Of a DNA stretch of 64,000 nt, positions 2,514 to 50,629 are shown one piece after another. Both the position numbers and the translations under genes were made by a program. The DNA is taken from the IMG/VR virus record IMGVR_UViG_3300049793_000366, positions 124,001-188,000 of that record; one strand, written 5' to 3'. A model generated the notes under the pieces. It did no database searches and was not told where the DNA came from. It was given only the letters and a program-made list of their open reading frames with translations. How positions within the stretch are numbered: position 1 is the first letter of the stretch; the number at the start of each line of letters is the position of its first letter.

Positions 2514-2575
2514 ATTTAATATTCAAAATCTAATATATACAAATATAATATAAAAAACTATATATCCAATAAAAT

Positions 2576-3205
2576 ATGAAAAAATTTTCCACAATTACCG
2601 GAGTAAAAGTAGGTCAACTACCTGAAAGTAAGCAAGATAATGATGTCCAAGATAATTCGGACAATCTTAGATTTATCATAGATTCTATGATAAATAGCTA
2701 CTTAAAAATCGAGTTTAATGGACCTTATACAACTGAACACTTCCAACAAACTTCTAAAATAGAAGGTAGAGAGACATTTATTGATGCTCTTATCGGTCTT
2801 CTTAAAGAAAAAGAAGTTCAACAACAGATTAAGGTTTTAGAATCATTAAAATCTGATGTTCGTGATTGGAAAGCAATTGATGAGAAGATTGATGGATTGA
2901 ATTTACTATTAGAAAAGCAAACAGCGGGTGATACTGCTAAACATAAGAAAAGAATTGAAGACCTTTTGAAAAAAGAGGATCCAATTGAAATGGCTAAAAT
3001 ACAAGCATCAAGAATGACAGACGGTGAAAAAGCTCACTATCGTTATCTTATGGCTAAATCTATGAAAGATTTATCTTCAATGGAAGGACTTTTAAAGAGA
3101 CTTAAGAAGGATAAAGTTGAACGTACAAAAACTCAAGTGGTTAAATTACTTGAAGAAATCGCGAACATCTTTAAATTCAAAGCTGACCAATTAGGATATA
3201 AATAA
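2576..3205 (+). CDS. Hypothetical helical protein, late-motif gene
   Basis: 209-aa ORF; AATATATA at 2532-2539; MKKFS N-terminus. Confidence 0.6.
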   Translation: MKKFSTITGVKVGQLPESKQDNDVQDNSDNLRFIIDSMINSYLKIEFNGPYTTEHFQQTSKIEGRETFIDALIGLLKEKEVQQQIKVLESLKSDVRDWKAIDEKIDGLNLLLEKQTAGDTAKHKKRIEDLLKKEDPIEMAKIQASRMTDGEKAHYRYLMAKSMKDLSSMEGLLKRLKKDKVERTKTQVVKLLEEIANIFKFKADQLGYK

Positions 3206-3216
3206 TATTTAATACT

Positions 3217-3462
3217 ATGATTAAGAAATTTAGCGACTTCGATAAGATAAATGAATCAGCGCCTATTGCTGAGTTAGAATCAGCATTTCAACACACTAGT
3301 GCGTATGCTGATGCAAGAGCAAAAGTAAAGGCAATAACAGATGAGTTAGAATTTAAATTTCACGACTTCTGTGAGCAAAACGGTCACCCAGGTGCCGAAG
3401 GTGACAATGACTGTGAGATGACATTCAATAACATCTTAATGGAACTTGTAAGTAGATACTAA
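3217..3462 (+). CDS. Hypothetical protein with capsid-targeting-like N-terminus
   Basis: MIKKFSDFDKINES. Confidence 0.6.
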   Translation: MIKKFSDFDKINESAPIAELESAFQHTSAYADARAKVKAITDELEFKFHDFCEQNGHPGAEGDNDCEMTFNNILMELVSRY

Positions 3463-3464
3463 TT

Positions 3465-3944
3465 ATGAAGCATCTTAAACGTTTTAATGAAGCCATTGAG
3501 AAATTTAAGTATTCAAAAAAGGATATAGAAGACGCATATAAGTTTGTAAATGTTTATGCAAGGTCTGCTAGATTTGAACCAGAGTTCGATGCTGAAACTT
3601 ACTATTACGATAAGATAGGAACACCAAATTCATTTACATATTTAGAAAAGAATCAGAAAACATCGGGTGGTGGTAAGGTTAAATCTGCTAATATAGTGGC
3701 TTATGATAAAAAAGGTAAATTGGTTGGGTTATTAAGTATTTCATTAACTGAACCAGTTGGAGCATTTAAAATCGTAGTAGCCGAAGATTCTGCCCGAAAA
3801 GGATGGGGATTAAAACTATTAGATGAAGCAGAAAAAAGAGGGTTTGATATGGTTAACTATATGAAAAACAATACGTTCACTCACTCCGGAAGACGCTTAT
3901 GCGAAAAATGGTTGGAAATAAAATTAGAAAAATTTGAACTTTAG
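3465..3944 (+). CDS. GNAT-like acetyltransferase with capsid-targeting-like N-terminus
   Basis: MKHLKRFNEA; acetyl-CoA-binding motif A-like IVVAEDSARKGWGLKLL. Confidence 0.55.
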   Translation: MKHLKRFNEAIEKFKYSKKDIEDAYKFVNVYARSARFEPEFDAETYYYDKIGTPNSFTYLEKNQKTSGGGKVKSANIVAYDKKGKLVGLLSISLTEPVGAFKIVVAEDSARKGWGLKLLDEAEKRGFDMVNYMKNNTFTHSGRRLCEKWLEIKLEKFEL

Positions 3945-3964
3945 TAAATTTTTTACTATATTTG
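3933..3964 (+). promoter_or_regulatory. Bacteroidota primary-sigma promoter (-33 TTTG / -7 TATATTTG) of leuS leader
   Basis: TTTG 3933-3936, 20-nt spacer, TATATTTG 3957-3964. Confidence 0.75.
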
Positions 3965-3980
3965 TATTATGATTACAACA

Positions 3981-4016
3981 ATGAACACAAACTTACTCCT
4001 ATTAGCAGACTCATAA
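3981..4016 (+). CDS. Leucine leader peptide MNTNLLLLADS (upstream in-frame ATG at 3969 also possible)
   Basis: Four tandem Leu codons TTA CTC CTA TTA (3993-4004) between promoter and terminator, directly upstream of leuS. Confidence 0.75.
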   Translation: MNTNLLLLADS

Positions 4017-4018
4017 AC

Positions 4019-4082
4019 GTGCCTGACTGATAAACTATTATATCTACCCTTGGCACCAAAAATGTCAAGGGTTTTTTATTTT
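4019..4082 (+). promoter_or_regulatory. Transcription attenuator (antiterminator and terminator)
   Basis: Terminator stem ACCCTTGGCA 4046-4055 / TGTCAAGGGT 4063-4072 plus T-tract; GTGCC 4019-4023 is complementary to GGCAC 4052-4056 in the stem. Confidence 0.75.
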
Positions 4083-4102
4083 AAAAATTAATTATACAAA
4101 CA

Positions 4103-5368
4103 ATGAAAGAAGAAAAATATATCGCAGTAATGTTTCCTTACCCATCTGGTAGCGGATTGCACATAGGTCACTTTTATAACTATGCTATAATCGATTCATA
4201 TTGTCGTTATTGGCGATATAAGGGAGTTAATGTATTTCAGCCATTTGGTTATGATTCATTTGGCTTGCCTGCTGAGAATTACGCGAAGAAAGTAGGTCGA
4301 GATCCTAAAGATGTTACATATGAAAACATCGAGAGGTTCAGAGCGCAAATGGATAAGATGGACACTCAATATGAAGAGAAGTTGATAACATCTGACCCTT
4401 CTTACCAGAAATGGACTCAGTGGTTGTTCACTAAATTGAAAGAACACGGTTTGGTTTATAAAGCTAAAGGGGATGTGAATTACTGCCCTTCTTGTGAGAC
4501 AGTATTGGCTCGTGAACAGGTTAAGAATGATAAGTGTGATAGATGTTCATCTGTTGTTGAAACCAGAAGCTTGGAGCAGTGGTATTTTAAGATAACTGCT
4601 TATAAAGACCGTTTGATTAAAAACTTGGATAAGATTGATTATCCACAAAGTACGATTAATGCTCAAAGAGCTTGGTTGGAGAATTTGCACGATTGGTGTG
4701 TTTCAAGACAACGTAGTTGGGGTTGCCCTATTCCAATAGAGGGTGAAACTGATACATTGGACACATTTGTAGATTCATCATTCTATTATATCAGATATTG
4801 CGACCCATATAATGACAACGAAATTTGTGCTAAAGATAAGTACAAACAAGTTGATGTTTATGTAGGTGGTAATGAACACGCTTGTATGCATTTGATTTAC
4901 GCGAGGTTCATCAATATGTTCTTGTATGATATTGGTGTTGTCTCAGAAGAAGAACCATTTAAAAGAGTAATACATCAAGGTATGATTTTGAACAATGGTG
5001 CTAAAATGGCTAAATCGACTGGTAATGTTATTAATCCAGATGATTATAACTCTGATGAATTGAAATTTTATTTGATGTTCATTGGTCACTATTTCGATGG
5101 TGGTTCTTGGTCTGACCAAAACATATCTGGTATTAAACGCTTTGTCAATAGATTTAAAGAATGGATGTCGAGAGAGGGTGATGAAACGATTGACTTGGTT
5201 AAGTTTAAAGAAACTGTATTTGGTTATACAGAAGCTTTTAAATTCAATAAGGTTGTTAGTGAATTCATGGTGTTGGTAAATCAGAACAGAACTAAAAATA
5301 TCACAAAGGAATGTAAGAAGGAGATTGTTGATATTATTAAGATTTATATGCCATCAATAGAGGTATAA
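4103..5368 (+). CDS. leuS: Minimal leucyl-tRNA synthetase lacking the CP1 editing domain, with reduced C-terminus
   Basis: MFPYPSG..LHIGH, GYDSFGLPAEN, CPSC/CDRC zinc knuckle, QWYFKIT, DWCVSRQRSWGCPIP, DTLDTFVDSSFY, YVGGNEHACMHL, KMAKS. Confidence 0.92.
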   Translation: MKEEKYIAVMFPYPSGSGLHIGHFYNYAIIDSYCRYWRYKGVNVFQPFGYDSFGLPAENYAKKVGRDPKDVTYENIERFRAQMDKMDTQYEEKLITSDPSYQKWTQWLFTKLKEHGLVYKAKGDVNYCPSCETVLAREQVKNDKCDRCSSVVETRSLEQWYFKITAYKDRLIKNLDKIDYPQSTINAQRAWLENLHDWCVSRQRSWGCPIPIEGETDTLDTFVDSSFYYIRYCDPYNDNEICAKDKYKQVDVYVGGNEHACMHLIYARFINMFLYDIGVVSEEEPFKRVIHQGMILNNGAKMAKSTGNVINPDDYNSDELKFYLMFIGHYFDGGSWSDQNISGIKRFVNRFKEWMSREGDETIDLVKFKETVFGYTEAFKFNKVVSEFMVLVNQNRTKNITKECKKEIVDIIKIYMPSIEV

Positions 5369-5370
5369 GA

Positions 5371-5398
5371 AAAAACCCACTCAATTGAGTGGGTTTTT
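5371..5398. terminator. Bidirectional intrinsic terminator
   Basis: AAAAACCCACTC-AATT-GAGTGGGTTTTT between convergent genes. Confidence 0.8.
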
Positions 5399-5400
5399 AA

Positions 5401-5586
5401 TTAAGCTTCAGTTTTCTTAGCCTGTACATCATTTCTAACTTCTTTAAGAAGTTTGATTATGTCTTGAGCTTGTTTCCTTACTCGTGTTCCAGCGGCTTTA
5501 TTACCTTTAATAAAAGTCTTTTCATAGTCTTCTTTTAATGAAGATACAAGTTCAACAAGCTTGTCGTACTTATCTAAGTTATCCAT
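5401..5586 (-). CDS. Histone H1-like (Hc1-family) small DNA-binding protein
   Basis: KGNKAAGTRVRK motif typical of Bacteroidota Hc1-like proteins. Confidence 0.75.
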   Translation of the reverse strand: MDNLDKYDKLVELVSSLKEDYEKTFIKGNKAAGTRVRKQAQDIIKLLKEVRNDVQAKKTEA

Positions 5587-5641
5587 ACTAAATGTTTATT
5601 TTTTGTACAGTATATATTAAAACTACTGCCCTCTAAACACT

Positions 5642-6481
5642 TTAATAGTAATTAACAACTAAAATTTCTTGCGAATCACCAACGTTTTTGCGTCTTGCTA
5701 CTTTTTCGTAGTCATAACTAAGGTTCATTACAGTGTATTTCGATAATCTTTCCATAAAAGGATTTGGTACACCTTTGTGTATTGAAACACCACTAAAGGC
5801 GAATCTGATACCTCGTGCGTCTAAATCATCAATTGTGTCGTATAGTTGATTCTCTAATTCCTTTGACCAGAAAGCATTATAACCAGCTTCCGTTCCAATA
5901 TAAGGTGGGTCAAAATAAACAAAGTCATTCTTTTTTGGCGGGTTTATAGCCAAGAGGTCAACAAATGATAAATTGGTGAATTCAATATTTTTAGTGCTAA
6001 GTGCGTGACAGTATTTACGAATTTTTTGTATAGTGCTTTCATTGATGGCTCTTTTCCCCCATGTCTGGTTGAATTCAAATTTTTTATTAAATCGCATAAG
6101 ATTATTTGTACAAGAAGAAACCAACGAGAAAAATTGATACGGATCTTTAGTCTGATTGAATTCTGCCCTTAATTTAACGAATTCTTCTTGTGAGTCTTTA
6201 TCGATTTTAGATTCTAATATTTTCAATATTTCATCTTCAACAGTTTTTGTTTGTCCTGCCCTTTGTAGATTAATATAGAATTCTATTAGTGGTGTGATGA
6301 TATCATTTGCTATAACCTTGTCGTAGCAACAATTTATACTAACGGCTAAACCACCAGCAAATAAATCATAGAATTTATCAACCCCATTTGGATGAGGAAA
6401 GATAGTTAATAACTGGTTCATAAGTCTATCTTTAGAACCAGTATAATTTGTAGGTGGCTTAAGAAATCCTTGACTTATCAT
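5642..6481 (-). CDS. dam: Dam-like (D12 class) DNA adenine methyltransferase
   Basis: NYTGSK, YDLFAGG (motif I), FVYFDPPY (motif IV), EILVVNY C-terminus. Confidence 0.88.
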   Translation of the reverse strand: MISQGFLKPPTNYTGSKDRLMNQLLTIFPHPNGVDKFYDLFAGGLAVSINCCYDKVIANDIITPLIEFYINLQRAGQTKTVEDEILKILESKIDKDSQEEFVKLRAEFNQTKDPYQFFSLVSSCTNNLMRFNKKFEFNQTWGKRAINESTIQKIRKYCHALSTKNIEFTNLSFVDLLAINPPKKNDFVYFDPPYIGTEAGYNAFWSKELENQLYDTIDDLDARGIRFAFSGVSIHKGVPNPFMERLSKYTVMNLSYDYEKVARRKNVGDSQEILVVNYY

Positions 6482-17838: not shown

Positions 17839-19719
17839 ATGGCATCAAAAATACATGGTAAGCAAATTAAAGATACCAGTATCTCGTTAGCTAAAATTAG
17901 TCCAATTACTGGTCAAGTTTTAACATTAGCAGGTACAACAAAAATTCAACAAAATGCATTACCAACGATTGCAACTGATTTAACCAACAAGCAATATGTT
18001 GATTCTGTTGCTGCTGGTTTTGATCCGAAAGCATCTGTAAGAGTTGCCACAACTGGTAATATAAACTTAGCGAGTGCGCCTGCTACTATTGATGGTGTTT
18101 CGTTATCAAATGGTGATAGAGTTTTAGTTTGGCAACAATCATCTAATACTGAAAATGGTATTTATGATTACAATGGTTCTGGTTCAGCGATGACAAGGTC
18201 AACTGATATGGATGGTGCGCCAACCTCTGAGGTTTCTACTGGTAATAATACTTTCGTTACAGAAGGTCCAACTTATCAAGGTAATGGATATGTTGTTATA
18301 GCATCTGGTACTTGGTCTGGAAATTTAACTGTTGGTGTTGCTCCGATTGTTTGGACGCAATTTTCTGGTGCTGGTTCTTTTGTTTGGGGTGATGGTATCT
18401 CAAATACTGGTAATAATATTTTTGTGGATTTAGCTGGTGCATCTGGCTTAACATTCTCTGCTAATAAGTTGACTGTTGATTCAAATATCGCTGGTAGTGG
18501 ATTATCATTTTTATCTGGTGTTTTAAACGTAAATACAGGTAGTGGTTTAACTATCACTGCTGATAATGTTGTCGTTGATTATAGTACTGTTGGGAATATA
18601 ATGGGTGGTGCTGGTTTAACAGTATCGGGTAATACTTTAGGTGTTGGTGCTGGTTCTGGTATATCTGTTGGTGCTGATTCTGTTGCGGTTGATTATAACA
18701 CTGTTGGAAATGTGATGGGTGGTGCTGGTTTAACCGTATCAGGAAATACATTAGGTGTTGGATCTGGAAATACTGGTATATTAGTAACTGCTGATGGTGT
18801 TGGTTTATCAATGTCTGTTACAACTGACTCGTCATTATCTTTAATAGCTGATGGTTTAAAATTAAACAGAACTACATTAGCTAACAATATGTTAGGTTTA
18901 GGTACTTCTTCATCTTTAACTGCTTCTGCTGGTAACTTACAAGTTTTAGTAGATGGTACAACAATAACAAGAAATGTAAATGGTCAATTAGTAGCGAATG
19001 TTACTGATGCTTCAACTCTTGCTGGTGCTGGTTTAACATCATCTGGTAATGTGTTAAATATATTATCTGGTAACACTGGTATCTTAGTAACGGCTGATGC
19101 TGTTGGTTTATCGATGTCAGCGACAACAGATTCATCATTATCTTTAGTCGGTGATGGTTTAAACTTAAATATAACTACATTAGCTACTAACTTAGAGGGT
19201 ACTGGTTTAACATCAAGTGCTGGTAAGTTAAACGTAGTCACTGGTACTGGTATTACAATATCTGGTGATGCTATCACAACAAATGCGGCTCTTATTAATA
19301 CTACTGCTTATTTAAATACAACTAACGTAGCTACTGGTTCATCTGTTCAAGCGGCTTTAAGTGCTATTGACACTGCATTAGCAATGTTGAGTGGTACAAT
19401 AGAAACAATTTCTGTTAGTAGTAATCCTACTGGCACATTCTTAGCATCTGTTACAACGCCTGTTGCTATTAATACGGGTGTTACATACTCAAGATTATCA
19501 AGTGGTGAAGCATTTGTTTTTGTAAATGGTGTTAGTTACGGAGTTGGTAATTCTGGTACAGCATCAGATTTCTTCTTCGCTGCTACTACATCATATTCTG
19601 GTTCATTAACTGCGTCATCTACTGTATATGTGGGTTCATATTTATGGTCTACTGTATCAGCATTAGGTTTCGACTTAGATACGACAGATGAAGTTCTCGT
19701 AAAATATAACGCTTATTAA
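17839..19719 (+). CDS. Tail-fibre/whisker-like structural protein with internal repeats
   Basis: TNKQYVD, IDGVSLSNGDRVLVWQQ..ENGIY head domain, many GxGL-T-x-SG repeats. Confidence 0.75.
   Translation: MASKIHGKQIKDTSISLAKISPITGQVLTLAGTTKIQQNALPTIATDLTNKQYVDSVAAGFDPKASVRVATTGNINLASAPATIDGVSLSNGDRVLVWQQSSNTENGIYDYNGSGSAMTRSTDMDGAPTSEVSTGNNTFVTEGPTYQGNGYVVIASGTWSGNLTVGVAPIVWTQFSGAGSFVWGDGISNTGNNIFVDLAGASGLTFSANKLTVDSNIAGSGLSFLSGVLNVNTGSGLTITADNVVVDYSTVGNIMGGAGLTVSGNTLGVGAGSGISVGADSVAVDYNTVGNVMGGAGLTVSGNTLGVGSGNTGILVTADGVGLSMSVTTDSSLSLIADGLKLNRTTLANNMLGLGTSSSLTASAGNLQVLVDGTTITRNVNGQLVANVTDASTLAGAGLTSSGNVLNILSGNTGILVTADAVGLSMSATTDSSLSLVGDGLNLNITTLATNLEGTGLTSSAGKLNVVTGTGITISGDAITTNAALINTTAYLNTTNVATGSSVQAALSAIDTALAMLSGTIETISVSSNPTGTFLASVTTPVAINTGVTYSRLSSGEAFVFVNGVSYGVGNSGTASDFFFAATTSYSGSLTASSTVYVGSYLWSTVSALGFDLDTTDEVLVKYNAY
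18574..19190 (+). repeat. Intragenic duplications in the fibre gene
   Basis: VDY[SN]TVGN[IV]MGGAGLTVSGNTLGVG occurs twice; GNTGILVTAD[GA]VGLSMS[VA]TTDSSLSL..DGL.LN occurs twice. Confidence 0.75.
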
Positions 19720-25508: not shown

Positions 25509-25544
25509 ACTTGCAAATTAGATATAATGTCCGTATATTTGTAT

Positions 25545-34608: not shown

Positions 34609-37600
34609 TTATAAACTTTGATTAGTGTTGCTATTTGATTGTGCTATTTGATTGACAACACTTTTTTGTGTCGGATCAGCTTCATCACATTCTATATAGT
34701 ATTTATTATCCCATGTGCTTTTGAATATAAAATAGTGTTTGAAGCCATAGCCATATTCATCAATCATTGGATAGATAGATTTTAAATCCTTAGCATCCTT
34801 TAGTTTAAGTATATTCTTCTTTCTGTTTATTTTTGAGAATTTTCTCTCTTTCATAATACCGAAATTAGATAAGCTTGTATCAAATTTGCAATTGTGGTTA
34901 TCTACCTTATTGAATAGTTCGATATCATAGAATATAGGCATATAATATCCACTGAATCTATATAGACTCGTAGTTGTTAGATTTTTAAGCCCGTGAATAT
35001 TATCAACTACTAAATTATCACCTTTGTGTTGGATTATATTTGTAGCTAATGGTATATCATTATAGTAGTTTAATTCATTAGTAGATTTAACTGTACCTTT
35101 GTCTAATAAGAATTTTGCTTTAATTAAATTTTTATTTGGTGATACGGGTTCAACCTTATATGAGTTCAACTTCGTGGTTACTTGGTCTGGTGCTTCTGCT
35201 AATAATATAACAGGTAAATTAGTCCAATTGTATGATTGTGTTGCACCATCGATGTAGTATTTAATCGTATCGCTGAATCCATACTTCTCACTCACATTAT
35301 TCATATAGTTGATGAAGTTATTAGCAGTAAGTTTTGAGAATAATTCATTATATAAATCATCCCTCTCCTTATTCTTAATAGAAGTATAGGTGTTGTCATT
35401 TATGTAGATATGAAGAAGAATTTCCTTATTCTTGTTGTTTATATACATATTGATACCATTCTCTAATGTTGAGTTAGAAGTAGGTGATGTACAATAGTAA
35501 TATCTACTATTGAATTTAATAATATTATTATTCGTTATACTATATGGTAGTGTTGTATCATCAACCAATGAGTATTCACGAGTCCAAGATGCATTAGTTC
35601 CTGGTTCATCAAGATACGAACCAACTAACCTCCATAATATATCATTATGAACAGCGTATTTACCATTCAATGCTACAATTGCTGGTGGTGTTATTTTACT
35701 CCATAATATTACCTTGTTCCATTTAAGTGTAGATGTCGGTAATGTATTATCTACTCTCCAAGATTTAGATGTGAGTGGATAAGAACGGTTTGTCGATTTA
35801 AGTGACCTATAATATTCACCATTGAATATAATATATTCATTAGCATTGTAGTTTTGCTTTGGATTCCAGAAGCTAACTGTACCAGCACTATATGAATAGT
35901 AATCACCGTGGTGATATACTGCGCTATCATAAACCACTGTTGGTGATAATGTATAAGTCTTGGTTGGATTCCATAATATAGATGTTATACCACTTATAGT
36001 TCCCCAAGATACCGTACCATTTGTATATCCAACATCTGTTGTTAATAGTGGTGTGAATAATGATTGTGGTCCAACGGTTGTAGTAAGTGTTGAATTATTA
36101 AGTGTTGGGCTACCTGGATATACAGACATATTTGTTAGTGTATATGGTGTAGAACCTACGTAGACGAATACAATGTCATTAAATATAAACTTCTCACCGA
36201 ATGTGTATTCTTCTTCTTGATTAAACTGTGAGAATGTTTCCCATGTTAATTCATTCTTTATTGGAAATACAGACCCAGTTGCCGAATCAGCCATTAGTAC
36301 GGAGAATTTATATCCTTCGTAATCATTTGTTGATTTAGTTATGATTGAATCAATAGACCCATTTTTAATAATTAGCTTATCAACATCATATAGATAAAAC
36401 TTAATACCCTTAAATACTGTGTGATTAGTTATGACTGAATCCTTTGCGTTAAATCTTGAATACTTTTTAGTATTTCTAATAGTAGAACCACTATCTAATA
36501 TTTCCTTCTTATCAAATAGAGAAGCGAAATAAGATATCGTACCAGAGTATGTACCTTGATATGCCCATGTAGCCGCAGTAGCAGCTATTCCAGTGAAGAA
36601 TAAATCAGGATTAAATGTAAAAGAATCTATGTTTTTATTACTATCTAATATCTGTACGTGTAAACTTTGCTCAACATAAGATGTTGTTGATGAATTTATT
36701 GTATAGAAATAATCTAAATTATTTTCCATACGTATAGGTCTTGTTTCATATACATTAGCAACCCTATTAAAGTCATCAGCTATAAATGAATTATTCAAAC
36801 GATATTCCTCATCAAAATGAGAGTTTGAATGTTGATATCCCCATTTTGTTGACGTGATATTCTTTCTCCATAGTGAGTTAAGTTCATTATTGTGAACTTC
36901 AAATAACTCACCAGTAGCGATGTATTCAGATGATGTTGGTATATGTACTAATTCTTTATTAAATACATACTCACTAAGTCTTTGTGGGTACTCAAGTGAA
37001 TCTATATCCTTAGAATATAATTTTAATTGTTGTGTATCGGTAAGTGAATCTGATTTTTCATATTCAAATTTCGAAAAGTTTGTATCAATGATAGATGTTT
37101 CAAAATCCTTAATATCAGAAAAGTAAACCTTGTATATTTTAAATACTGGTGGTTGATGGTCTTTATCGATAATTAATGGTATAACCGTTTTATAAGCTGG
37201 GTCACCCTCGTTTATATAATATTCGAATGTTAATTCAGTAGATTTGAATCCATAATCAGATTGTATGTGTAGAGATCCATTACTATCAACTCTTATTACG
37301 TGCCATTTATCATCTATCTCAATGACAAATAAATCACAGTTCTTAGCTTCGTTTATAAATTTATTATAACTAGCTTGATTATTAACGAAAGTTAGTATGT
37401 TGCTTGAATCAACATTTATAATATTAGCATCTATTATACCTTCTAATCCAGATAAATCTAAATCAGATATAATTCTGTAATTTACAACGTTTAATAGTTG
37501 TAATTCATCAGTAGCTAAACCTTTTCTTGACTTAGTTCTTTTGTTTAATCTACGTGTATTTGTGAATTTCTCTACCTTATAAAAGATACCATTTATTTCA

Positions 37601-41775: not shown

Positions 41776-41888
41776 TTCTTCCTGCTAATTTTTTATTATA
41801 TATAAAAAAAATATGGTTATGTACCATAGTTGGAATCGCTATTTGTGTGGATTTCGCCATTTGGATTTTTTTGCTTATATTTGTAATT

Positions 41889-43600: not shown

Positions 43601-43632
43601 TTTGCACAATCAAAAAAAGTGTTTTATATTTG
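43601..43632 (+). promoter_or_regulatory. Bacteroidota-type promoter of the Pth2/HD operon
   Basis: TTTG 43601-43604, 20-nt spacer, TATATTTG 43625-43632. Confidence 0.75.
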
Positions 43633-43682
43633 CAGAGTAAACAATTATTAATATATAAACTATAAACAAAAAACAAAACAAC

Positions 43683-44048
43683 ATGAAGTAGATTAACAAC
43701 AAAAACGAAACCAAGCTGGTAACTGTAACCAGAGCTGATATAGCTCCTGGGTATCAAGTGGTTCAATCAGCACATTCAATTGCCGATTTCGCGGCTGAAT
43801 TTCCACAAATTTTCTCCCAGTGGAAGATGGAGTCAAACTCTATCATTTGTCTTTCTGTGAAAGATGAACAAGAATTACTAAAACTGTACGATAAGTTAAG
43901 AACGCAAGGTGTCTCTGTGGTCAAATTTTTTGAACCCGATATTGACGCTGATACTTCTATTTGCCTATATGGCACCCCAGAAGTTAGAAAGAAATTATCT
44001 AGCCTTCCATTGTCTTTGCGTACAAAAGAATCAGTATTAACAAACTAA
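43683..44048 (+). CDS. Peptidyl-tRNA hydrolase type 2 (PTH2)-like protein with in-frame TAG at codon 3
   Basis: ATG AAG TAG ATT...: MK*INNKNETKLVTVTRADIAPGYQVVQSAHS...; the PTH2 N-terminal motif (KLVxVxRxD..G...Q.AH) lies upstream of the ORF-track GTG start 43758; FFEPD...TSIC. Confidence 0.7.
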
Positions 44049-44060
44049 AAATCAAACAAC

Positions 44061-44660
44061 ATGAAAACAACTCACGATTTGTAGATTACATTCAAAGAAT
44101 TGCTCAGTGATATGAAGAACTGTGAGCAGACCAAAGGTCAGTCAGTTCTACAACATGGTATTTCTGTAAAGAACTACTTCTTTGATTTAATCAATCATTT
44201 AAAACATGGTACACCACTTAAATATACGTGGAAGTTACCGGATTGGGTCTATGAAAACAAAGACCAATTATTATCGAGTCTACCTAATGATAGGACTCTA
44301 AAACTCTACACCATTCTACATGATTGTGGTAAGCCATATTCTCGTGTAGTTGATAGTGATGGAAAAGTACACTTCCCTAATCACGCTGAGATATCCTATC
44401 AAACATTCAAAAATCTTTATGATGATCCTATTGCCTCTTTTTTAATTAAAAGTGACATGGATATACACACCCTAAAATCTGATGGTGTTGAAGAATTTTC
44501 TAAAAATCCATATGCCTTAACGTTATTGTTGAGTGGCTTAGCCGAAATTCATTCAAATGCTCAGATGTTTGGTGGTATAGATTCCACGTCCTTTAAAATT
44601 AAGTGGAAATGCATCAATCAAAGAGGTAAGCAAATTATTAATCAATTAAACAAAAAATAA
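44061..44660 (+). CDS. HD-domain phosphohydrolase with in-frame TAG at codon 8
   Basis: ATG 44061 MKTTHDL*ITFKELLSDMK in frame with ORF 44100; QHG..V, LHDCGKP, HFPNHAEIS. Confidence 0.7.
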
Positions 44661-50575: not shown

Positions 50576-50629
50576 GAAAAAGTTTGTATATTTGTAATTG
50601 ATTAATGGACACTAAAAACCAAAACATAT

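Follow-up and report, generated by a model that had tools for sequence, protein, structure and literature searches.

A putative leader-peptide attenuator in front of a minimal leucyl-tRNA synthetase gene in a huge phage

Organization of the locus

A short leader region precedes a gene for a minimal leucyl-tRNA synthetase (LeuRS) in the 64-kb stretch of DNA that was analysed, referred to here as the window. A promoter box, a short leader open reading frame (ORF), the motif GTGCC, an intrinsic terminator, and the LeuRS gene follow one another on the plus strand (Table 1). A co-directional upstream gene ends at 3944. The DNA is that of a huge phage, and the host is probably a member of the Bacteroidota. 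A sequence-only reading of the window had named the leader ORF, its Leu codons, GTGCC, GGCAC, the terminator, and a leuS start at ATG 4103, and all of these were confirmed at the same positions. Two of its assignments held only in part. The gene that it called leuS encodes a minimal LeuRS and not a full LeuS, and the promoter that it proposed appears instead to be a Bacteroidota-type box, with no support for the sigma-70-like hexamers.

Table 1. Features of the leader region and of the LeuRS gene, with positions in the window.
Feature	Position	Strand	Description
TTTG, possible -33 element of a Bacteroidota-type promoter	3933-3936	+	20 nt upstream of the -7 box; read from sequence; tentative
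Promoter box TATATTTGTA	3957-3966	+	Enriched in the window; recurs before homologous leaders
Leader ORF	3969-4016	+	MITTMNTNLLLLADS from ATG 3969 or MNTNLLLLADS from ATG 3981; stop TAA 4014-4016
Regulatory Leu codons TTA CTC CTA TTA	3993-4004	+	Read from sequence
Region 1	4000-4014	+	Last Leu codon and distal leader codons; pairs with region 2 in the minimum-free-energy fold
Region 2	4019-4032	+	Core GTGCC 4019-4023; alternative partners are region 1 or the terminator 5' arm GGCAC 4052-4056
Intrinsic terminator	4046-4082	+	Stem ACCCTTGGCA / TGTCAAGGGT, loop CCAAAAA, T-tract 4073-4082
Minimal leucyl-tRNA synthetase	4103-5368	+	421 aa; HIGH and KMAKS motifs; all 20 Leu codons TTG

The minimal leucyl-tRNA synthetase

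The encoded protein is a LeuRS of the catalytic Rossmann-core type. It was matched by TIGR00396 (leuS_bact) with E = 2.9e-117 and 392.9 bits, which is under the cutoff of 548.4, and LeuRS was the best match by a wide margin (ValRS, 4.8e-44). The LeuRS of T. thermophilus (1h3n in PDB) was aligned with E = 4.6e-87. The HIGH motif is visible in this alignment, and KMAKS was read from it by eye. The architecture of a full-length LeuRS is not met, as the protein has 421 aa vs ~860 and the CP1 editing, leucine-specific, and C-terminal tRNA-binding domains are missing. There is no counterpart for T. thermophilus residues ~225-417, 437-486, and 579-635, or for those beyond ~700. While the Leu identity of the enzyme family is shown, tRNA charging by the mini-LeuRS is inferred. 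That the gene appears to be regulated implies that its product raises Leu-tRNA levels.

The comparison also revealed a widespread, phage-specific LeuRS core of 421 aa without editing or C-terminal domains. The LeuRS gene of distant relatives sits within clusters of phage tRNA-Leu genes.

The promoter region

The box TATATTTGTA matches TAnnTTTG, which is taken to be the Bacteroidota -7 consensus. Seven copies were found in the window vs 1.5 expected, and none of 100 shuffles reached seven. At least four copies are closely followed by a gene start in the correct orientation. The box also precedes the leader in five related loci (L040, L002, L034, L050, and L038), and TAnnTTTG variants are found there in two more (L046 and L053). 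Only the longer TATATTTGYA box is enriched; the generic TAnnTTTG motif showed no enrichment upstream of genes (6 vs 4.0 expected). The -33 element is tentative because its spacing from the -7 box is not conserved in L002 or L034. The aatTTGaac sequence around 3933 is also present in L040.

A sigma-70 promoter, TTGAAC-17-TATATT, was rejected as being no better than chance (10 promoter-like sites vs 13.2 expected). The sigma-70-like hexamers overlap the TATATTTGTA box. No promoter box was found between the terminator and the leuS ATG, a gap of 20 nt of A/T-rich sequence. Therefore, all LeuRS transcription must cross the terminator.

The leader ORF

Two in-frame ATG codons could begin the leader ORF. 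The first is located 4 nt after the promoter box and is possibly a 5'-terminal AUG, so the peptide may be MITTMNTNLLLLADS. The leader has no Shine-Dalgarno (SD) sequence, which is normal here because an SD was found in only 2 of the 71 window genes. Four consecutive Leu residues occur in 13 of the 1166 short ORFs of the window. Since such runs are not rare, the Leu run alone is weak evidence. Translation of the leader is inferred. The last Leu codon starts 17 nt before region 2.

Recoding of TAG was considered since four leaders end in TAG and two window ORFs carry an early in-frame TAG. It was not supported in the window, where coding density went from 0.867 to 0.875 with TAG read as sense.

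The terminator and its alternative pairings

The 5' and 3' arms of the terminator are designated regions 3 and 4. A terminator scan of 3000-6000 identified it as the only convincing terminator on the plus strand. The stem-loop (4046-4072) has 10 pairs, five of them G-C, and the stem alone has an energy of -13.7 kcal/mol. Compensatory changes were seen in 5 of 11 terminator pairs in the RNAalifold consensus of 12 sequences.

Region 2 can pair in either of two ways. When 3969-4082 is folded, a hairpin at 4000-4032 forms together with the terminator (-21.1 kcal/mol, z = -3.2), and equivalent 1:2 hairpins occur in other leaders. When the segment 4017-4062 is folded, 4019-4023 pairs with 4052-4056 instead (-9.0 kcal/mol, z = -4.1), with 0/200 shuffles as good. 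The 5-bp GTGCC:GGCAC helix alone is modest, with a duplex energy of -9.2 kcal/mol that 4% of shuffles equal, and with only 5 bp the antiterminator of the window is the weakest of its family.

These pairing potentials were explored through constrained folding in 11 complete leaders. A ribosome covers ~12-13 nt downstream of its A site. With the ribosome on the first Leu codon, the 2:3 helix formed in all 11 nascent leaders (-9 to -14 kcal/mol), and with the ribosome on the last Leu codon it formed in 10 of 11 (-5 to -9). The exception is L040, in which the last Leu codon is directly before the stop and a ribosome there leaves no antiterminator. With the ribosome at the stop, nothing formed (0 to -2.2). 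The full leader RNA folded as the 1:2 hairpin plus the terminator. Region 2 begins 0-6 nt after the stop in all leaders. Thus, as judged by the masked folds, region 2 is hidden by a ribosome that has reached the stop but stays accessible while one sits on the Leu codons. The nascent RNA of the window, when free of ribosomes, favours the antiterminator over the 1:2 hairpin. It is possible that untranslated transcripts of the window read through, unlike those of the classical trp case.

Conservation in related huge phages

The decisive evidence is comparative, as the whole arrangement is conserved in 12 further loci. No match was found by megablast of 3400-5400 against GenBank phages, and the relatives were identified through the protein. 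In total, 13 loci of related huge phages (11-12 of them distinct) possess the promoter, the Leu-rich short ORF, the antiterminator after the stop, the terminator, and LeuRS in this order. These sequences are akin, and the conservation counts represent fewer independent events than loci.

The leader peptides of the relatives, MNININLLLLSTL, MTQNLSLTLLCNRT, MNFSKVNILLLSLTK, MKNFTKNTLLLSLTK, MINNNVNILLLPLT, MKQNAKSLLLLLL, and MKQIFVNTLLLLSLF, can be set beside MNTNLLLLADS of the window. They are 11-15 aa in length and have in common only 4-6 Leu codons; start and stop are kept. Since region 1 includes part of the Leu block, an RNA-level constraint contributes to the conservation of the block.

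Antiterminator pairing is kept in all homologues. The mean duplex energy of region 2 with its own region 3 is -11.4 kcal/mol, vs -6.6 for non-cognate classes. In two loci, L039 and L045, the terminator stem is a different one (CCCGGA) and region 2 (TCCGG) matches it, with energies of -9.5 vs -2.8. A pairing register common to 10 of 12 homologues has 81.5% of its cells paired vs 33-52% in slid registers. One antiterminator pair switches from G-C to A-U. Column-wise covariation of the antiterminator was not significant in a column-shuffle test of the MAFFT alignment, in which only one pair changes on both sides and the shuffles were not exceeded. Support for the antiterminator relies on the slid-register control, the cognate vs non-cognate energies, and the changed-stem class.

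The leader travels with the LeuRS gene and not with the upstream gene. This was shown by comparing neighbours, which vary among loci and are divergent in L002 and L053. All leader-bearing genes are located in one LeuRS clade of 17 (SH-aLRT 96), and 0/500 label shuffles were as clustered. The tree is a quick tree and not the product of a careful maximum-likelihood search. Six members of the clade, L003, L006, L042, L043, L052, and L044, show no leader, although the upstream DNA of L044 is too short to judge. The leader is therefore dispensable.

A search with a covariance model returned a single copy for the 64-kb window (91 bits) and no copy elsewhere. A loose pattern, CTGAG...AACCCTCRGYA, was also searched in viral contigs. 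Its hits L119-L200 were unrecognised by the covariance model and are chance matches. The hits L201-L237 lay outside the covariance-model search, and the pattern scan is uninformative on leaders before other genes.

A plain leaky terminator could possibly account for this arrangement. It would insulate LeuRS from upstream transcripts, LeuRS would be made by constitutive read-through, and the short ORF would be incidental. The frequency of four-Leu ORFs in an AT-rich window, the co-directional gene that ends just upstream, and the chance-level sigma-70-type match favour this explanation. However, L002 and L053 retain the leader and terminator even though their upstream neighbour is encoded on the opposite strand. 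In addition, a conserved promoter box precedes the terminator and no other follows it before the ATG, and an in-frame Leu block with region 2:3 complementarity occurs in 11-12 distinct sequences, including the changed-stem class. A leaky terminator is thus considered very unlikely.

An independent small gene that adjoins LeuRS is another explanation. The unit would encode an sRNA of ~110 nt or a small hydrophobic peptide. A promoter and a terminator do define a short transcript, terminated attenuator RNAs can act in trans (PMC6614838), and the peptides are hydrophobic at their C-terminal ends. However, these peptides of 11-15 aa have only Leu in common. The unit invariably sits right before LeuRS, or before a coupled Leu-free ORF, in the same orientation, and is found nowhere else; LeuRS itself has no separate promoter. 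There is very little to recommend this explanation as a replacement for attenuation, although a function in trans could conceivably coexist with attenuation and would not exclude it.

Codon partition between the leader and the gene

Attenuation is also consistent with the choice of Leu codons. The LeuRS gene uses TTG for 20/20 Leu vs a background of 11% (P about 4e-20), its other amino acids are normal, and no other gene by amino-acid pair in the window deviates as strongly as its Leu usage. The TTG bias is 83-100% in the leader clade. The 10 distinct leaders contain TTG in 0/44 Leu codons and have TTA (18), CTC (10), CTA (8), CTT (5), and CTG (3). TTA, on which the bulk of the demand falls, makes up 52% of Leu codons, and 54/59 in a virion gene. 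An ORF inserted between the leader and LeuRS in L038 and L049 has zero Leu. Another lineage writes its effector message only in CTG.

These codon statistics are shown, and they agree with a prediction of selective-charging theory. According to this theory, the leader of an attenuator is written in those synonymous codons whose tRNAs are the first to lose their charge, and the other isoacceptors remain charged (PMC1183508). Here, TTA and CTN would serve as sensor codons and TTG would serve the gene. The literature searched yielded no all-or-none partition (20/20 vs 0/44) within a single regulatory unit of a virus.

Proposed mechanism

The sequence features meet what is expected of an attenuator: a promoter-proximal ORF with tandem cognate codons, a downstream terminator, a mutually exclusive antiterminator, and suitable geometry. 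The region likely functions as a ribosome-mediated leader-peptide transcription attenuator that ties mini-LeuRS expression to the speed at which Leu codons are read. There are no experimental data. The sequence anatomy and its conservation are shown; the response of termination to Leu-tRNA and the coupling of transcription with translation in the host are inferred.

Transcription would start a few bases past the TATATTTGTA box, and a ribosome would at once begin the leader of 11-15 codons. If charged tRNA-Leu is plentiful, the ribosome would reach the stop and its footprint would lie over GTGCC. With region 2 covered, the terminator would form and transcription would end before the LeuRS gene. 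If Leu-tRNA for TTA or CTN is scarce, the ribosome would stall on the regulatory codons, where it would mask region 1 and free region 2. The free region 2 may then pair with GGCAC while the 3' arm of the terminator is still to be transcribed, and read-through into LeuRS would result. In the absence of a ribosome, the full leader is most stable as the 1:2 pairing plus the terminator. For its leucines, the LeuRS message requires UUG decoding alone and would be translatable while the sensed isoacceptors are depleted. Its product would restore charging and close a negative feedback loop.

The attenuator proposed by the sequence-only reading is thus supported by independent comparative evidence that was not available to it. 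Its geometry argument held: 0-6 nt separate the stop from region 2, and the distance of the upstream Leu codons is enough to free region 2. It had also proposed the folding of alternative conformers and a comparison of homologous loci. The three states were reproduced in 11/11 complete leaders, and the Leu run was kept through synonymous changes as the remaining peptide drifted. Its suggestion of anti-phage tRNA attack as the trigger is speculation only; TTA demand of phage late genes or leucine limitation is equally possible.

A trans-acting switch is an alternative to a ribosome-mediated one. Either uncharged tRNA-Leu would bind the leader, as in a T-box, or the mini-LeuRS would bind its own leader, as is the case for E. 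coli ThrRS. The choice between terminator and antiterminator is real, synthetase genes are often under T-boxes or autoregulation (PMC1262725, PMC2965389), and tRNA-Leu genes are present in many of these phages. However, the transcribed leader is only ~110 nt and has no conserved large structure. Upstream of region 2, it is an ORF with synonymous Leu codons that is conserved and not a fixed RNA sequence, and the short distance held between the stop and region 2 is relevant only if a ribosome is involved. A T-box or known Rfam leader was rejected since a cmscan of 3400-4600 (E up to 10) gave no match to T-box or Rfam leaders (Leu, His, Thr, Trp, and others). The only hits, NsiR1, RsaJ, and SCARNA7, were at chance level and far below gathering scores. 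A trans-acting switch therefore seems very improbable.

Returning to ribosome-mediated attenuation, a bolder reading treats leader and gene as a single designed unit that makes use of selective charging of tRNA-Leu isoacceptors, a self-contained viral Leu-tRNA homeostat. The case for this reading is no stronger than the case against it. Such a homeostat would work while the sensed isoacceptors are depleted by a late-gene burst, leucine limitation, or host anticodon nucleases. If true, this would be the first description in a virus of a leader-peptide attenuator that senses an amino acid, and a natural all-or-none test case of selective-charging theory. The full separation of the sensor codons (TTA and CTN, with no TTG) from the effector codons (TTG alone) offers a clean natural illustration of selective isoacceptor charging.

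Comparison with known systems

Genes for tRNAs and aminoacyl-tRNA synthetases have been described in huge phages (PMC7162821), and their control is essentially unknown. No precedent was found in the literature searched for a leader-peptide attenuator in a phage, for a truncated phage LeuRS, or for cognate-codon restriction in synthetase genes. This is weak evidence, as most subscription journals were not covered. If the attenuator is real, the phage would follow in real time how well a tRNA pool, of the host or of the phage, is charged, and would switch on its own synthetase only when needed. The leader is short, modular, and SD-free and has a Bacteroidota-type box, which could make it a Leu-responsive part for use in such hosts.

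The mechanism itself is already known in bacteria, in leu, pheST, and the predicted Streptomyces leuS attenuators. The leuL leader of E. coli and Salmonella, which belongs to the Rfam Leu leader family, resembles the phage element in having a short ORF, four consecutive Leu codons, and mutually exclusive pairings set by ribosome position. Its codon choice is biased toward starvation-sensitive Leu codons (PMC1183508), and the biosynthetic operons of E. coli are the setting for which selective-charging theory was built (Elf et al., 2003; Elf and Ehrenberg, 2005, PMC1183508). Unlike leuL, the phage element controls a synthetase and not biosynthetic enzymes, has a Bacteroidota-type promoter box, and lacks an SD. 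No sequence or structure homology was found between the two (no Rfam match, E up to 10).

The pheST operon of gamma-proteobacteria, with its pheM leader, also has an attenuator before a synthetase, cognate regulatory codons, and induction by scarce charged tRNA (cited in PMC1262725). It responds to another amino acid, is unrelated in sequence, and belongs to a cellular gene for an enzyme of full size. The predicted leuS attenuators of Streptomyces avermitilis and S. coelicolor combine Leu codons in a leader ORF with an antiterminator and a terminator. Like the phage case, they are a comparative-genomics prediction only (Seliverstov et al., 2005, PMC1262725). However, they are located in GC-rich actinobacterial chromosomes and precede a full-length LeuRS, their sequence is unrelated, and no codon partition between leader and gene has been reported for them. 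The leuS T-boxes of Firmicutes are similar in that a fall in charged tRNA-Leu releases transcription of the synthetase from a terminator. They bind uncharged tRNA through a structured RNA of 200-300 nt and require no translation, whereas the phage leader is ~110 nt and is inferred to be translated. If the proposed mechanism is true, the control logic of the phage would be that of the bacterial amino-acid operons.

Organization of the leader

The sequence-only reading had proposed a leucine-sensing ribosomal attenuator in front of the phage LeuRS gene. All of the elements that it listed (a promoter, a short leader ORF with tandem leucine codons, GTGCC, its GGCAC partner, a terminator with a T-tract and the LeuRS start) were confirmed in position. 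On computational evidence only, it is likely that the leader controls the LeuRS gene by classical ribosome-mediated attenuation. The terminator is the sole convincing one on the plus strand within 3 kb, and no promoter box was found between it and LeuRS. The minimum-free-energy fold shows a hairpin (4000-4032) of region 1, the last leucine codon and distal leader codons, with region 2, the GTGCC-containing segment after the stop (1:2 hairpin). An additional in-frame ATG is present at 3969, 4 nt past the promoter box. Since several genes of the window have an ATG 4-5 nt after a TATATTTGYA-type box, the leader may start at a 5'-terminal AUG.

By itself, the evidence from the window leader is modest. 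LLLL is present in 13 of the window's 1166 short ORFs. A sigma-70-like promoter match before the leader did not rise above chance level and was rejected. The antiterminator, in which region 2 pairs with region 3 (the terminator 5' arm), is a 5-bp duplex that was equalled or bettered by 4% of shuffles. The folded antiterminator segment has a z of -4.1.

Coordinates of the features in the window and in homologous mini-LeuRS loci (L-numbers)
Feature	Locus	Position	Strand	Remark
Leader ORF ATG	window	3981	+	MNTNLLLLADS, then stop
Leu codons TTA CTC CTA TTA	window	3993-4004	+	
Leader stop TAA	window	4014-4016	+	
GTGCC	window	4019-4023	+	partner of GGCAC
GGCAC	window	4052-4056	+	
Terminator stem-loop	window	4046-4072	+	T-tract to 4082
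LeuRS gene	window	4103-5368	+	ATG at 4103
Virion or head-decoration-like gene	window	17839-19719		
TATATTTGYA	window	2538-2547	-	
TATATTTGYA	window	3957-3966, 25534-25543, 35035-35044, 41876-41885, 43625-43634, 50587-50596		
mini-LeuRS/tRNA cluster	L024	949-2979		
mini-LeuRS/tRNA cluster	L027	2354-2976 and 6215-6297		
mini-LeuRS/tRNA cluster	L029	2692-2776 and 4407-5385		
CTG-rich LeuRS gene	L005	3001-4248		
CTG-rich LeuRS gene	L058	887-2092		
Inserted ORF	L038	2852-2995		
Inserted ORF	L049	120-251		

Leader in related loci

The upstream DNA of 118 homologous mini-LeuRS loci was inspected. A common leader layout was found in 13 of these (11-12 distinct sequences), namely the window, L040/L041, L039, L045, L046, L048, L053, L038 (LR745206.1), L002, L034, L050 and the 5'-truncated L049. 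The loci are related and therefore represent fewer independent events than their count. Four elements make up the layout: a promoter box, a short ORF, a post-stop segment that begins 0-6 nt beyond the stop and is complementary to the terminator 5' arm, and a terminator that ends with its T-tract 22-44 nt upstream of the LeuRS ATG. Besides that of the window, the leader peptides are MNININLLLLSTL, MTQNLSLTLLCNRT, MNFSKVNILLLSLTK, MKNFTKNTLLLSLTK, MINNNVNILLLPLT, MKQNAKSLLLLLL and MKQIFVNTLLLLSLF. Only the leucine block is common to the peptides, and its codons change synonymously (e.g., CTT CTG TTA, CTG CTA TTA and CTT CTA TTA), which argues for selection on codon identity and not on peptide or RNA sequence. 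That the terminator is merely leaky and the short ORF incidental is very unlikely. A switch driven by a factor without translation, either T-box-like or through LeuRS autoregulation, is also unlikely, because the leader has no Rfam match and what is conserved is the ORF, not the RNA sequence.

The gene directly upstream of the leader varies by locus, and L002 and L053 carry it on the other strand. Thus, the unit goes with the LeuRS gene rather than serving a neighbour as its terminator. That it is an independent sRNA or peptide gene is very improbable. In L038 and L049, the leader and LeuRS are separated by a conserved ORF of 43-47 codons (MK..ITE.DWIESKYRT.EWE.SV.ITYWEHD...) that runs up to the LeuRS start; in L038 its stop overlaps the LeuRS ATG. 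This ORF contains no leucine codons.

The alignment was turned into a covariance model, which has a single hit in the window (3962-4082, 91 bits) and none in loci without the leader or among the chance pattern-match loci L119-L200. When 96 mini-LeuRS sequences are placed in a quick maximum-likelihood tree, every leader-bearing gene falls inside one clade of 17 (SH-aLRT 96), and this clustering was reached by 0 of 500 label shuffles. A single origin of the leader followed by a few losses via rearrangement fits this tree. One member of the leader clade, L006, lacks the leader and has a TATATTTGTA box 4 nt before the LeuRS ATG (about 2975-2997). Possibly, the attenuator was deleted there and the promoter retained.

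Proposed terminator and antiterminator switch

The 11 complete leaders were each folded under ribosome masks. When the first leucine codon is in the A site, nascent RNA that lacks the 3' arm adopts the 2:3 helix in every one of the 11 leaders (-9 to -14 kcal/mol). When the last leucine codon is in the A site, the helix forms in 10 (-5 to -9), the exception being L040, in which that codon immediately precedes the stop. A ribosome with the stop codon in its A site allows no structure (0 to -2.2), which leaves the terminator free to form. The complete leader RNA folds as the 1:2 hairpin plus the terminator. The antiterminator of the window is the weakest among the leaders, and its nascent RNA without a ribosome favours the antiterminator over the 1:2 hairpin.

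Compensatory changes were found in 5 of 11 terminator pairs. Region 2 varies in step with region 3. Cognate 2:3 duplexes have a mean of -11.4 kcal/mol, compared with -6.6 across classes. Two leaders with an altered terminator stem (CCCGGA/TCCGGG) carry a matching region 2, TCCGG, and their duplex is -9.5 with their own region 2 versus -2.8 with the majority type. In the common antiterminator register, 81.5% of cells are paired versus 33-52% in slid registers, and one pair moves from G-C to A-U via G-U. Covariation in the antiterminator leans in favour of the pairing and is suggestive only, not rigorous, because the column-shuffle control was not significant; the sequences vary little, and the class that deviates is in another register.

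A minimal LeuRS

The 421-aa product is clearly a LeuRS (E = 2.9e-117 to TIGR00396 versus 4.8e-44 to ValRS; E = 4.6e-87 to T. thermophilus LeuRS). That it charges tRNA is inferred. It consists only of the catalytic core and a short helical tail, with HIGH and KMAKS motifs present and no counterpart of the CP1 editing domain, the leucine-specific insertion or the C-terminal tRNA-binding domain. Its TIGR00396 score is under the equivalog cutoff. Mini-LeuRS genes are common in viral, metagenomic and huge-phage contigs, with 37 IMG/VR loci and at least 587 confirmed metagenome stretches.

In distant members (61-64% identity), the gene is within phage tRNA-Leu clusters (anticodons CAA, TAA, TAG, AAG and GAG), an independent tie of the gene to leucine. 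These clusters (L024, L027 and L029) also hold tRNA-Ser, tRNA-Val and tRNA-Cys genes, and no leader was found at these three loci. In L034 (3001-4256), the LeuRS frame is broken; the ORF stops after 263 codons, yet tblastn aligns residues 1-419. The interruption is either a frameshift or an error of assembly.

Leucine codon partition

The LeuRS gene of the window uses TTG for 20 of its 20 leucine codons, while the other long ORFs use 11% TTG and 52% TTA (P about 4e-20 against the window background). Codon usage is ordinary for every other amino acid of the gene, and no other pairing of a gene with an amino acid in the window is as strong an outlier as LeuRS/Leu. Leucine content is 4.8% versus 8.4% in the background. 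Leader-bearing homologues of the leader clade use TTG for 83-100% of leucines and TTA for the remainder, and many non-leader lineages show equal TTG bias. The LeuRS genes of L005 and L058 have CTG in 19-20 of 20-22 leucine codons, that of L024 only TTR (TTA/TTG), that of L029 only CTN (CTT/CTC/CTA), and that of L066 avoids TTG, CTC and CTG. Flanking genes have ordinary codon usage in the TTG-biased lineages and in L005, L058, L024 and L029; L066 has no flanking ORF that is long enough. The bias is gene-specific and conserved, and the favoured codon changes with lineage. As inferred from codon usage, it is possible that each phage makes its LeuRS message depend on certain tRNA-Leu isoacceptors.

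The ten distinct leaders have TTG in 0 of 44 leucine codons. The second strongest codon outlier in the window is a virion or head-decoration-like gene with TTA in 54 of 59 leucine codons, which shows TTA to carry the bulk of leucine demand. High expression of this gene is likely, as inferred from sequence alone. In selective-charging theory, the high-demand isoacceptor loses its charge under limitation while others remain charged, and it is the sensitive codons that attenuator leaders contain (PMC1183508). By analogy with this theory, the leader codons are those expected to be sensitive, and the LeuRS codon would be that of a separate low-demand isoacceptor. This split between sensor and effector supports the attenuation model. 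A TTG-only message would solve a bootstrap problem, the making of LeuRS while Leu-tRNA is short. Anti-phage tRNA attack, which the sequence-only reading had suggested as a trigger, is speculative; the demand of the phage's TTA-rich late genes or leucine limitation would be equally suitable.

Phage genome and probable host

IMGVR_UViG_3300049793_000366 is a 507,910-bp viral contig, and the window encodes homologues of baseplate-wedge, head-decoration/virion and clamp-loader proteins. The closest GenBank relative for the LeuRS gene is LR745206.1, a 634,780-bp uncultured phage. Phage genomes of >634 kb have been placed in the Mahaphage clade, with predicted replication in Bacteroidetes (PMC7162821).

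An SD core was found in only 2 of 71 window genes, versus 5.7% of random positions, and the bases upstream of gene starts are A-rich and G-poor, which fits a Bacteroidota host. TATATTTGYA has 7 copies in the window against 1.5 expected, at least 4 of them just upstream of gene starts and some with no more than 4-5 nt between box and ATG. The sequence agrees with TAnnTTTG, the -7 consensus of Bacteroidota. Inferred from sequence alone, it is likely the -7 box of the phage's (host-type) promoters, and the short distance to the ATG hints at possible leaderless mRNAs. The copy at 43625 has TTTG ~20 nt upstream. Among 185,579 reference genomes, close full-length copies of the LeuRS gene were found only on three small MAG contigs, labelled Bacteroidota, Flavobacterium and 'uncultured bacterium'. 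SD scarcity, box enrichment and MAG labels are all consistent with a Bacteroidetes/Bacteroidota-type host, which is likely.

No tRNA genes were found within the 64-kb window, which covers only part of the 508-kb genome. The adjacent ORFs 43683-44048 and 44061-44660 each start with an ATG, soon meet an in-frame TAG (codon 3 in the first, codon 8 in the second) and are open thereafter. Coding density gives no support for TAG recoding in the window (0.867 vs 0.875). A wrong choice of start is the simpler reading; local recoding is not excluded.

Comparison with known systems

In the literature searched, whose coverage is incomplete, no phage attenuator of this kind, no truncated LeuRS of this form and no single-codon rule in a synthetase gene was found to be reported. 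The attenuation mechanism itself is familiar. Leader-peptide attenuators are textbook cases for leu, his, trp, thr and pheST. Predicted examples exist for Streptomyces leuS and trpS (PMC1262725) and, in bacilli, for hisS paralogues (PMC2965389). The phage leader works like these bacterial leader-peptide attenuators, yet it belongs to no curated family. What is new is that the setting is viral, that initiation is SD-less and possibly leaderless, that the enzyme is minimal and that the codons are partitioned in an all-or-none manner.
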